Of a DNA stretch of 64,000 nucleotides, positions 48,960 to 52,078 are shown piece after piece (positions within the stretch are counted from its first letter, which is position 1; every line of letters begins with the position of its first letter). The position numbers and the translations under genes are program-made. Location: the NCBI GenBank assembly GCA_977016875.1, contig CDRNST010000354.1, forward strand, positions 1,116,001 through 1,180,000, given 5' to 3'. The notes below the pieces were generated by a model, which was not told where the DNA came from, searched no databases, and was given only the letters and a program-made list of their open reading frames with translations. Source of the stretch: Pavona decussata. Lineage: Eukaryota.

Positions 48960-51459
48960 AAATACAGCCACAAAGAATCTCCATCATTTCAGGCCCAAAT
49001 AAACAAGTAAGCTTCGAGTCTATAAATTCCAAATTTATTGTAAACTTTACATGTAATAATAATAATATAATAAGTTCATTTGTGTTTCTTTCCTCTTTGT
49101 TTGCTTTGGCAGTAAACTTCTGTACGAATTGTACAAATTAGCAAAACAAGATGCTGAAGAACTGGATCGAGAGGAAAATTTAGGCAAAAACAACTCCATT
49201 TTGAAGATTCTAATACAGAAAGTGGTACAGGAGTGCCGGGTCCCTAGTGTGATAATAAATCATAGACTGATGCAAGAATTCAAAACAAAGATATGGAGAC
49301 TAAATCAAGCACTGGCCAACGCCAAAACTATGGGAGGCAATGGGGTGAGAAAACTCTATTCTCAGTGGACGAAGGGTAACCTTTCAACCTGAAGTTTTAA
49401 GATATATTATGATGAAATGGCCTGTGTGCGGCTTCAAAACGAAAACAATGATTTGAGGAATCGAGAAAGATGACTTTGGCAAGAAGGCCAAAATTGAACA
49501 GAAGTTGAAGGAATCTGTGGCTAGAAAACAAGGGAATTACTGGTAAATTTCAAGTCTTTTAAAAAGCTAGTTCAGAAATTAATGAAACTACAAAAAGATA
49601 AGAAATTAAGAGGCCCTGCCAAAAAGAAAACATTTCAAGACTATAGCAAAAGGCATCAAAGTAGAGTTCGAAGGCAAATGGTCACAGTCTGCGAAACATC
49701 ATTGTCATTTCTTGGACTTAACAATTTTGTTGTCGCTAAAGTTGAAATATTCCATGAGAATACCCAAGAGTACGAGACCCTTACATTGGTTGACAAGGAA
49801 GACATTCAAACCTCATCTCGAACCGAGACACTCACTAATGAAGAGATTGATGAGATTAATTTACTGCTCTACACAAAGGAAAGGTTTAATATATCAAATG
49901 AAGCATATCATGAATTTGCTATGATATGCAAGGATCTACCTCGGTCATGGAAAGTCCAGGAGAGGATAAAGGCTTTAAATAGTAAATGTAATCTCTAAAG
50001 TACTCCTAATGATACATGTAGCATCCAGCAGAGCATCAAGGAATGACTAGAAATAAGGTTGCAGACTCTAATTAAAAACAGTCCTTCAAACTCTACTTTC
50101 ATAAAAAAATCATAAAATTCTGGGGATGGTACCAATATTGGCAAAAGGCTACACGTCATCAATGTTACCTTCACTGTCCTTGATGAAGGAACATTGGCTC
50201 AGGCAGCTGACGTCAATCATTTGATATCTGTTATAAAGGAAACTGAAAACTATGAAAAACTTTCTAAAGCACTTACAGACATCCAAAAAAACGTGGACTA
50301 CCTAAAACATTTGTCAGTGGGAACAGAGCAGTTTAAAATCGAGTGGTTGTTGGGAGGAGGTTGGAAATTCTTGGCATGTGCTTCCGGTCTTGGTGCTGCC
50401 CATGCTACCCACCCCTGTATTTGGTGTAAGTGTACCCTATATGCCAATTATGATGGAAGAAAGGAATGGTCCCTCTCTGATGTCTGAAAAGGAGCACGTT
50501 CAATTCAAGAGATTCAACAACAAGTGAATGCAAGGTCAAGAGCTGTGGAAAGGTACAATTGTAAAAAAGCTCCACTTTTTCCTTCAATTCCCCTTGATCA
50601 TGTTGTCATAGATTCACTGCACCTTTTTCTTCGAATTTCTGACAACCTAATTAACCTCCTCATTCAAGAATTGCAACGTCAATATGCAATTGACAAAAAG
50701 AAAACAGTTAATGATGGTTTCGAGAGATCAAAATACAAGCACATGGCTGGCTGGGAAACATATCTTAATGATACCCTTAAATTCCATTCAACTGGTTTAT
50801 CTCTAAGGATTCCAAGAAATTGAAATGGCGGGATCTAACAGGCCCAGAGAAACAGAAATTATTTAGGAACATTGATTTCACTCAGGTATTGCCCGGGCAT
50901 CAGAAATCTGAACAAATTGCACTGTTGTGGAAACAGTTTCTAACAATTACAAACATGTTGAGTTCCACTAGTCCTCAACTGAGCAAAGAAGAAATTCAGG
51001 ACGCATCAAAATCCTTTCTGGAACAGTTTTTGAAATTGTATCACACTAACCATGTTACTCCCTACATGCATGAACTTGTATGGCATGTGCCAGAATTTAT
51101 ACAAATGTATGGTAACATTACCCCCTTCACTCAGCGAGGTCTAGAAAAACTCAATGACAAAACAACAAAGGACTATTTCAGATCTACCAATCAACGAGGA
51201 CTGGACTCTTTAAAACAAATTGTACAAAAAAGAAACCAAATGGAATATTTACAGGATCTTGGATGCCAAGAAAGGGAAAAGGAGCATCACTTGTGTTAAC
51301 TGTAATTTAGAAGGCCATAATATTAAGACCTGTTTATCACATTGTAGCTCATGTACATTTAAGCCACGTTGTTCTCCATTACATGTGTTCAAATCAAATG
51401 GCAAATGGGTTAAGAAATGTCAACATGAGAATAACCACGTTTTACCCCAAACCATGTGA
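48960..51459 (+). pseudogene. RAG1-core/Transib-like transposase copy 2 (intron 49007-49112; probable ATG at 41705, displaced by BEL)
   Basis: SGDGTNIGK, LGGGWKFL, HPCIWCKC, VIDSLHLFLRI, WRDLTGPE, TPYMHELVWHVPEFIQMYGNITPFTQRGLEKLND and C-terminal CVNCNLEGHNIKTC; many lesions. Confidence 0.82.
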
Positions 51460-51482
51460 TCAGGATTATTAAAATATGTATG

Positions 51483-52078
51483 TTACTTCCATGCATTGTC
51501 GTTGTATTCCGTTCTGACACCATCTCCTCGAACAAACGTAAATATGAGTTGCAGATCACTCTGCATATGACTTTCAAAAAGTGTATCCCCCATGTAGACA
51601 AATTCCTTAACTGGATTATTTACATGAAGCCAAAATTGCACTGTTCCAGCAACAACATAGCAGAAATCTCCATTGATGTTCAGTATTCTCTTGTGTCATT
51701 TGTTTCCCAAAATGTTACAAAGCTGGCGATTATTATTTAAATAATGGACATTTCTTCCTCTTGACTTCCTGACCACTCCAATATCCGACAGGTGTACCTG
51801 ATAAATGTCCATATCGATACATGTCTCTATTCGCACTGCAGGAGATTCCCTTTTACTTGAAAACAAGGCAAATTTTATTTCCCTTGCAAGACAACAGAAC
51901 ATGGCTCCTGCCCTGTCCTCAAAAGATTGATCACTCGGAAAAAATCGTGGGACATAGCGGCCAACAGAAAGTTTTTCGGCGTTCGCTAGTTGGTCAGCAT
52001 CTCTCCACTCATCATATTCAACAGAATATCTGATGAAGTGGATTTTTACTTTGTTGCTGCTTTTATCCCTTTTTAGAC
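51483..52078 (-). pseudogene. Chromo-barrel/Tudor-knot domain protein, 5'-truncated by Penelope
   Basis: Minus frame: KRDKSSNKVKIHFIRYSVEYDEWRD...LAREIKFALFSSKRESPAVRIE...LGNK*HKRILNINGDFCYVVAGTVQFWL...LIFTFVRGDGVRTEY; one internal TGA. Confidence 0.65.

Follow-up and report, generated by a model that had tools for sequence, protein, structure and literature searches.

The 64,000-bp stretch of Pavona decussata DNA analyzed here (contig CDRNST010000354.1, positions 1,116,001 to 1,180,000; "the window") carries, at its positions 48960 to 52078, two genes that face each other tail to tail. They are the remains of a two-gene cut-and-paste DNA transposon. One gene encodes a transposase with a RAG1-like catalytic core, and the other encodes a small partner protein with a predicted domain of the Royal family (MBT/Tudor/chromo-barrel-like). 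The copy in the window is dead: it is decayed, split by a BEL/Pao retrotransposon, and truncated at its 3' end, and neither gene can work. It is an ordinary relic, and the interest lies in the family that it reveals. For that family we favor, at a probability of roughly 60%, a reading in which the Royal-domain partner is an accessory protein of the RAG1-fold transposase and couples transposition to chromatin state.

The transposase could be assigned by its fold. An AlphaFold2 model of the 543-amino-acid (aa) open core from a relative, L060 (predicted local distance difference test score [pLDDT] of 88.6; predicted template modeling score of 0.83), gave 49 Foldseek matches at E values of ≤1e-3. 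All of them were to RAG1, the amphioxus RAG1L protein BbRAG1L, or HzTransib, with template modeling (TM) scores of 0.59 to 0.68 over ~565 columns (0.59 to 0.66 for HzTransib) and a best E value of 6e-16; the next match was the P-element transposase at 1e-3. Since every protein matched at this threshold was RAG1, BbRAG1L, or HzTransib, we describe the transposase as RAG1-like at the fold level. Similarity to RAG1 in sequence is marginal. A profile built from 22 transposases found RAG1 as the sole meaningful match among PDB sequences (E = 7e-4) and did not reach the HzTransib chains, and single-sequence phmmer searches of PDB with transposase pieces returned coiled-coil and SAP noise only. The profile alignment placed GGDwKF..CiWC on RAG1 GyDEK..CtLC and, colinear with this stretch, tPYmHa..HvPeF..GlEK on RAG1 tNYlHk..HvPEi..GNES. 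Pfam RAG1 (PF12940) matched the window piece at 50781 to 51296 (profile positions 543 to 603, E = 0.005) and was the only transposase family to recur among members; the Pfam CACTA transposase families matched none of them, and zf-CCHC matched weakly. The nearest named ESM-Atlas clusters were the RAG1 and RAG1_RNase_H families and a DUF1280-bearing cluster. A word-index search returned 459 relatives without Pfam annotation, the named ones being from Paramuricea, Pocillopora, and Exaiptasia.

The family protein is ~800 aa long and consists of a coiled-coil N-terminal region, a pre-RNase H region, an RNase H domain with a zinc module between the second catalytic Asp and the Glu, and a CCHC tail. 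The N-terminal ~230 residues are Cys poor and coiled-coil-like, as judged from the consensus of family alignment A2 and from coiled-coil matches. Catalytic and zinc residues of the RAG1/Transib fold are invariant in alignments A2 and A4. The two His of the H-x4-H half-site and the Glu, all invariant in A2, align to RAG1 H937, H942, and E962. The second Asp and the first Cys are 19 residues apart in the family, which we take to equal the D708-to-C727 spacing of mouse RAG1, counted by hand. A preliminary description of this DNA, made from the letters and their open reading frames (ORFs), had listed the RAG1 core motifs in order, with Gly in place of the second Asp in this copy; every one lies where it was reported (Table 1), and the Pfam and profile matches to RAG1 show that the motifs exceed chance. 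L091, the closest relative found, keeps that Asp (GGDWKF).

Two members of the transposase family, including P0162, matched Pfam DUF1280, a Caenorhabditis family with no function assigned, over the region of the first catalytic Asp (E = 5e-5 to 8e-4). DUF1280 also marks the nearest named Atlas cluster, from Mucoromycota. It may be what remains of a transposase from this clade.

The partner is a protein of ~230 to 250 aa with a basic N terminus, a Royal-family β-barrel, a long helix, and a C-terminal α/β domain of ~140 aa. An intact 215-aa partner on contig C26 of this genome had 49 relatives without a Pfam domain, one of them from Actinia tenebrosa, while a profile of the C-terminal 150 residues reached 640 clusters (50% identity) at E values of ≤1e-3 and 308 at ≤1e-10. 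Nearly all of these clusters are 230 to 250 aa long with the same two-part layout, and one holds a protein of the sponge Dysidea avara. An AlphaFold2 model of partner P0018, of moderate confidence (pLDDT of 66), places the barrel at residues 44 to 91, followed by the long helix and the α/β domain at residues 125 to 245. The barrel (model residues 41 to 91) matched the folds of the PHF20L1 Tudor domain, ARID4A, MRG15, Tip60, and the HP1/Polycomb chromodomains, with Z scores of 3.0 to 3.7 over 41 to 46 residues. Searched against PDB, the partner profile found the MBT repeats of L3MBTL3 (1e-12) and the PHF20 Tudor domain (4e-5), then ARID4A, ESA1, MOF, and MRG15. Pfam MBT matched 12 of 22 partners, below the cutoff, and Tudor-knot matched 3. 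The cage pattern H-[YF]-x-G-[YF]-x3-[YF]-D-x-W has aromatic residues at its three positions in 42, 41, and 36 of 43 partners, and the Trp that follows is kept in 42 of them; we take these positions to correspond to the L3MBTL1 cage residues. Judged by sequence, then, the partner has a domain of the Royal family in which the aromatic cage positions are conserved. The chromo-barrel/Tudor-knot signature first read in the window was right as to the superfamily, but by profile the domain is nearer to MBT and PHF20-type Tudor domains than to the chromo-barrels of MSL3 and MRG proteins.

Profile comparison of both partner domains, as the preliminary description had suggested, identified the barrel as Royal and found no match for the C-terminal domain. 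Foldseek returned no PDB match to that domain at E values of ≤1e-3, and the best Z score in a wider fold search was 4.2. Atlas searches by shape and features gave Tudor/MBT rows for the barrel and only chance-level PLD leads for the C-terminal domain. Pfam found no kelch or PHD domain among the 22 partners. Because the partner lacks both and is unrelated to RAG2, the pairing is independent of RAG2, as had been proposed.

The two genes are consistently found together. In this genome, the transposase and partner profiles co-locate convergently on C354 (the window), C26, C34, and C80. Foreign pairs were found at L059, L060 (with four short Logan contigs), L087, L088, L089/L090 (metagenomes), and L091. 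All foreign contigs with enough sequence past the partner stop carry a convergent transposase there, the sole exception, L086, being a 1-kb contig that ends right after the partner gene. The stops are 23 bp apart in the window, as first measured from the transposase stop at 51459, ~190 bp apart in L060, and ~380 bp apart in L059. Linked partners are as little as 23 to 30% identical to one another, and therefore the pairing is old. Named hosts of the family are the cnidarians Actinia, Exaiptasia, Pocillopora, and Paramuricea and the sponge D. avara, whose protein falls in the partner cluster of L087. Open frames are kept in copies L051, L059, L060, L087, and L089, and the open transposase core of L060 stands beside an intact partner. 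All ~17 loci in this genome (4 of this lineage and ~13 of a sister lineage described below) carry stops or truncations. The preliminary description had proposed to look for the partner within shared terminal inverted repeats (TIRs) and would have given way to inconsistent linkage; the genes are convergent at all pair loci, and L091 and L054 (below) hold both within shared TIRs. We conclude that the convergent pairing is not a matter of chance and that both genes lie inside shared TIRs across lineages.

This conservation bears on whether the partner might be passenger cargo with no part in transposition, either a gene captured from the host or a factor that counters silencing. A passenger would sit uneasily with a position, orientation, and size kept across partners of 23 to 30% identity and two animal phyla, with the open frames of the five copies just named, and with the lack of free-standing long multidomain relatives among the best 150 of 640 clusters. 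It is true that DNA transposons of this clade capture host genes such as TET/JBP (PMC12730594) and that complex prediction, given below, offered no support for an interaction. On balance, we consider passenger cargo improbable and retain the partner as a probable accessory protein of the transposase.

Two of the copies have surroundings of their own. The L051 transposase, on C26, is split by an insertion of ~2.6 kb with ends at 1504 to 1779 (minus strand) and 4132 to 4464 (plus strand). These ends are inverted copies, each reading through as the same ORF start, MDAVKTDVGAAKPTLSPF.., and the insertion is likely another TIR element nested exactly after SGDG. In L059 the two-gene element lies between an ORF for a Pox_A32-like packaging ATPase and a long ORF with a weak Endonuclease_7 match (6885 to 7571 and 13859 to 16741), and it may have inserted into a Polinton- or virus-like element.

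The nearly intact copy L091 (ENA ERZ26692694, another assembly) shows the whole element. It is 89 to 92% identical to and colinear with the window in four blocks (Table 1), and its complete element, at 6264 to 10611, has both genes inside imperfect TIRs of ~55 bp with internal conserved blocks. Its transposase has long open frames with one stop, and its partner exons are open. Partner exon 1 begins MASHIKRSRPEKG and ends MYPIE and is followed by an intron (GTAAGT..AG) with a pyrimidine tract before the AG; the right TIR lies ~75 to 110 bp upstream of the exon 1 start codon. A 214-bp palindromic repeat that resembles a miniature inverted-repeat transposable element (MITE) and matches both strands adjoins the left TIR at L091 6050 to 6263, and the genome of the window holds at least 40 copies of it at 81 to 91% identity. 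The L091 flanks are either this high-copy MITE or unique sequence not found in this genome, and for this reason orthology of L091 and the window copy is not shown.

In a sister transposase lineage (~30% identity; C78, C90, C23, C175, and others), a distinct convergent partner occurs at ~13 loci, several of which were judged from coordinates. The sister partner has introns. Its exon 1 encodes the usual start of a chromodomain, and its exon 2 is a canonical chromodomain (Pfam Chromo, 41.4 bits versus a cutoff of 25.1); the exons were searched singly rather than as a joined protein. The C78-type element is represented by L054 2382 to 6831, where perfect-looking 21-bp TIRs (CATTRCCAGAAATYGGGGACA) enclose both genes and the transposase has two nonsense codons only. 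This element sits in another repeat, of which empty sites exist, and eight nonautonomous derivatives of ~900 bp keep both of its ends (L066 to L072 and L077 to L085). The sister partner is transcribed and spliced. In a 2.4-kb contig of the RNA-like run X1, L054 6593 is joined to 6500 and 6413 is joined to 6070, with minus-strand GT..AG signals, and these junctions are exactly the predicted partner introns; the DNA-like run X9 of the same organism has unspliced sequence and a deletion derivative instead. The type of run is a computed guess, and the contigs give neither strand nor level.

The long open frames of L091 and the spliced partner transcripts might be read as signs that the pair are domesticated host genes, a RAG-like recombinase with its own reader that is not mobile. 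TIRs that bound the gene pair, nonautonomous deletion derivatives, copies at many unrelated loci, decay at all ~17 loci of this genome, and L091 flanks that are not found here all speak against this, and we judge domestication very improbable. A mobile element in which the partner serves the transposase remains the preferred reading.

Termini of the form CAT..ATG were found in the L054 family, L059, L060, and L087, while L091 and the window have ATGCC../..GCCAC; 5'-CA..TG-3' termini thus occur in two of three sublineages examined. No target site duplication (TSD) of 2 bp or more was present at 12 insertions. The L054 insertion, the only one of the 12 so compared, showed no net duplication against empty paralogous sites. 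The same single base flanks both sides in 9 of the 12, which may reflect a 1-bp duplication or a preference for A/T-rich targets. Given that TSDs of at least 2 bp were absent, integration may proceed differently here than in RAG and Transib. The strict Transib hallmarks, a 5-bp TSD and a CACAATG-like terminus resembling the heptamer of the recombination signal sequence, were not found. TSDs and ends vary within one Transib sublineage (bioRxiv 10.64898/2026.08.26.747230), and since TSD length varies there, we regard the absence of a TSD as a difference from Transib and not as an exclusion.

In the mechanism that we propose, the transposase would excise and insert the element by DDE chemistry like that of RAG1 and Transib, and the partner would be an element-encoded accessory subunit. 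The Royal domain may dock on methylated histone tails via its aromatic cage while the C-terminal domain binds either the transposase or the ends of the element, and the partner could in this way tether or license transposition by chromatin state. Such a role would be analogous to those of the RAG2 PHD finger and the chromovirus integrase chromodomains and of independent origin. The main rival is an accessory protein that acts on DNA or RNA (at subterminal repeats, in nuclear import, or in expression), comparable to the En/Spm protein TnpA or the Myb-like PIF/Harbinger protein, with the barrel binding nucleic acid. Royal domains of the Tudor-knot and chromo-barrel types also bind nucleic acids, RNA or DNA, and for this reason we only infer histone reading by the partner. 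The basic N terminus would suit this rival, as would the conserved blocks inside the L091 TIRs, which could be binding sites, and two-protein systems are established in related superfamilies (for the context in this clade, see PMC12730594). It accounts less readily for the strong conservation of three aromatic cage positions across partners and for the use, in the sister lineage, of a canonical HP1/Polycomb-type chromodomain, the usual ligand of which is methyl-lysine. We regard a DNA- or RNA-binding accessory protein as unlikely, and passenger cargo and domestication as less likely still.

Nucleic acid binding by Royal domains is one of several points that weigh against a partner that couples transposition to chromatin. 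The C-terminal domain matches no fold or family and so suggests no route of coupling to the transposase. A complex prediction with the L060 transposase core and its own partner scored 0.00, with alignments unused, and says nothing on binding either way. Canonical Transib needs no partner. For this clade, it is unusual that TSDs of at least 2 bp are lacking. Finally, the two types of partner show no significant homology in their C-terminal domains (hhalign E values of 0.054 and 0.031, probability of <2%), and each lineage could have acquired its reader on its own.

The family resembles the RAG systems in layout. Like RAGL/ProtoRAG and vertebrate RAG1-RAG2, it has two convergent genes, inside TIRs in L091 and L054. 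Like RAG1 and RAGL, its first gene combines the RAG1 core fold, the DDE residues, and a C-x2-C/H-x4-H zinc module, and like RAGL and RAG2, its second gene encodes a domain belonging to a class of readers of histone lysine methylation. Unlike RAG2, the partner has a Royal barrel and an unrecognized α/β domain in place of the kelch propeller and PHD finger; unlike RAG1, the transposase has a coiled coil and a CCHC tail and lacks the N-terminal zinc finger/RING region; and unlike RAGL, the family has termini that do not resemble the CAC heptamer and shows no 5-bp TSD. RAGL pairs are invariably tail to tail, and cnidarian RAG1L-RAG2L pairs are known (PMC7204232). Those pairs differ from the two-gene element presented here. 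With Transib the family shares the core fold and the form of a TIR-bounded cut-and-paste element. Unlike canonical Transib (one ORF, 5-bp TSD, CACAATG-like ends), it has two genes, CAT.. or ATGCC.. ends, and no TSD of 2 bp or more.

A chromo-type reader on a mobile element has a precedent in the chromoviruses (Ty3/gypsy), in which the C-terminal chromodomain of the integrase steers insertion to marked chromatin. In those elements the reader forms a fused part of the retroviral-type integrase of a long terminal repeat (LTR) retrotransposon, whereas here it is a separate gene beside a RAG1-fold DNA transposase.

In the CMCT clade (EnSpm/CACTA, Mirage, Chapaev, Transib, Plavaka, ESTA, as well as Lanisha), C(2)C and H(3-4)H motifs lie between the second Asp and the Glu, and ESTA has also been reported with HHpred similarity to RAG1 (PMC12730594). 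The present family has C-x2-C and H-x4-H in the same interval, shares the 5'-CA..TG-3' termini in two of the three sublineages examined, and, like En/Spm, encodes a second protein. Kapitonov and Koonin assigned Chapaev, which is described as having a Chapa domain, to a broadly defined Transib superfamily (PMC4411706), and Chapaev3 has CAC ends, a TWA TSD, and one ORF (PMC3014272). Unlike Chapaev, the family shows no N-terminal Chapa zinc finger in the A2 consensus, where an upstream exon may have been missed. The coiled-coil-like N terminus, the CCHC tail, the non-CAC termini, and the lack of a TSD of at least 2 bp all speak against membership in canonical Transib, RAGL, or Chapaev. The term RAG1-like is correct for the modeled fold and the predicted active-site architecture, and it is not a statement on the branch within the CMCT clade. 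We found no description in the full-text literature of a Royal-domain partner of Transib, Chapaev, or cnidarian RAG-like elements; the family may have a Repbase name. As far as its sequences tell, it would be a RAG1-fold transposon of the CMCT clade whose second gene, of reader type, has not been described before and whose integration footprint is unusual.

The layout of two convergent genes had been recognized correctly in the window, but both proved to be pseudogenes and the element to extend past 48960 to 52078. The stretch at 48964 to 52079 is unique DNA in the 602-Mb genome, and its flanks are repetitive (an LTR end on the left and a multicopy repeat from 52079 on the right). Similarity to L091 begins exactly at 41275, and L091 continues uninterrupted from this left part into sequence that matches window 48955. 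The focal element is therefore larger than first described, because its left TIR and 5' region lie beyond a 7.2-kb BEL/Pao insertion. The inserted retrotransposon has two 402-bp LTRs (41713 to 42114 and 48553 to 48954), a 5-bp TSD, GCGGG (41708 to 41712 and 48955 to 48959), and a gag-pol ORF of 1734 aa (43279 to 48483). At the other end, neither an inverted match to the left TIR between 51400 and 64000 nor any L091 similarity past 52070 was found, and we conclude from this that the window lacks partner exon 1 and the right end of the element. Also missing are the partner intron and the first three codons (nine bases) of exon 2.

The window transposase is 91.4% identical to the L091 gene in nucleotide sequence and, relative to it, has at least four premature stops (49390, 49996, 50044, and 50485) and at least seven frameshifting indels, in addition to the Asp-to-Gly change. 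The partner has an open frame from 52124 to 51699 on the minus strand, which ends at an in-frame TGA (51698 to 51696), and a second frame from 51695 to 51486 that ends at TAA.

Table 1. Features of the focal element and its surroundings, in window coordinates
Feature	Position	Strand	Remarks
Left TIR of focal element	41275..41335	+	Starts ATGCCAAAAAAT..GACATTTG; aligns to L091 left end and to its reverse-complemented right end
Left terminal/5' untranslated part	41275..41712	+	~90% identity to L091 6264-6842
Block colinear with L091 6264-6663 and 6800-6842	41275-41712
BEL/Pao LTR retrotransposon, foreign to element	41713..48954	+	402-bp LTRs, TSD, gag-pol ORF; insertion absent from L091
Block colinear with L091 6838-9387	48955-51433
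Transposase pseudogene, RAG1/Transib-like core and C-terminal CCHC knuckle	49066..51459	+	Hidden Markov model (HMM) pieces, model positions 24-634, in three frames
SGDG, first catalytic Asp, end of strand beta-1	50119..50130	+	Asp invariant in alignment A2
GGGWKF, second catalytic Asp mutated to Gly	50353..50370	+	Consensus GGDWKF, Asp nearly invariant; aligns to RAG1 D708
CIWC, C-x2-C half of RAG1-type zinc site	50416..50427	+	Aligns to RAG1 C727/C730; invariant in A2
IDSLH	50608..50622	+
H-x4-H (HELVWH) zinc half-site, then GLEKLN with catalytic Glu	51069..51155	+	HELVWH 51069-51086; GLEKLN 51138-51155
Zinc knuckle C-x2-C-x4-H-x4-C, transposase tail	51292..51333	+	Read from sequence
Transposase stop TGA	51457-51459	+
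Block colinear with L091 9655-10258	51467-52070
Partner stop TAA	51485-51483	-
Partner pseudogene, most of exon 2	51486..52070	-	Partner HMM positions 44-235; 91.9% identity to L091 9655-10258
Royal-family domain core KVKIHFIRYSVEYDEWR	52052-52002	-	Three aromatic cage positions F, Y, Y and invariant Trp
Penelope-like repeat block (start), foreign to element, truncates it	52071..52300	.	L091 similarity stops at 52070

An earlier candidate for the left TIR at 41471 (CATTCAAAAAGTG) was dropped, as L091 puts the real left end at 41275. Immediately to the left, a transposase fragment of the sister lineage (40570 to 41271, plus strand; ISGDWATM.., GGDYKF, and CAWC; model positions 115 to 351) ends 3 bp before the focal left TIR. 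No partner gene was detected beside this fragment. Nesting of the focal element inside it was considered and rejected, as no downstream continuation of the fragment was found.

The BEL/Pao copy in the window is apparently intact. The genome has numerous near-identical copies, and LTR pairs spaced by 6.84 kb occur on C66, C67, C10, C53, C91, C101, C112, and C25, and the family is probably young and active. On the right, the sequence at 52079 to 52300 is a multicopy repeat in this genome, and the Penelope-like block to which it belongs contains a GIY-YIG ORF (52172 to 53122) and a reverse transcriptase-like ORF (53613 to 55592). A 179-bp piece of it (52122 to 52300) recurs on C36 (2799600 to 2859225) at intervals of ~3.78 kb over at least 10 units, a spacing that points to Penelope-like elements arrayed in tandem.

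How RAG1 became dependent on RAG2, and on the reading of H3K4me3 by RAG2, has yet to be settled in research on the origin of V(D)J recombination. To our knowledge, the material for comparison has until now consisted of RAG1L-RAG2L pairs and partnerless Transibs only. With an independent and widespread second case of a reader-type protein paired with a RAG1-fold transposase, RAG1/RAG2 would gain a natural comparison. The near-intact copies L091 and L060 make it possible to ask at the bench whether a chromatin-reading subunit is needed, which mark it reads, and whether it steers integration. The partner C-terminal domain defines a family of at least 640 clusters without a known fold or function, and the apparent lack of the usual target duplication on integration is relevant to how strand transfer works in this clade. 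More tentatively, it is possible, if doubtful at present, that an old sponge and cnidarian lineage of RAG1-fold transposons depends on a separately encoded methyl-lysine reader as a cofactor, with the coupling either ancestral or evolved at least twice. If this is true, licensing by the PHD finger of RAG2 would be one case of a general strategy and not a peculiarity of the vertebrate line.

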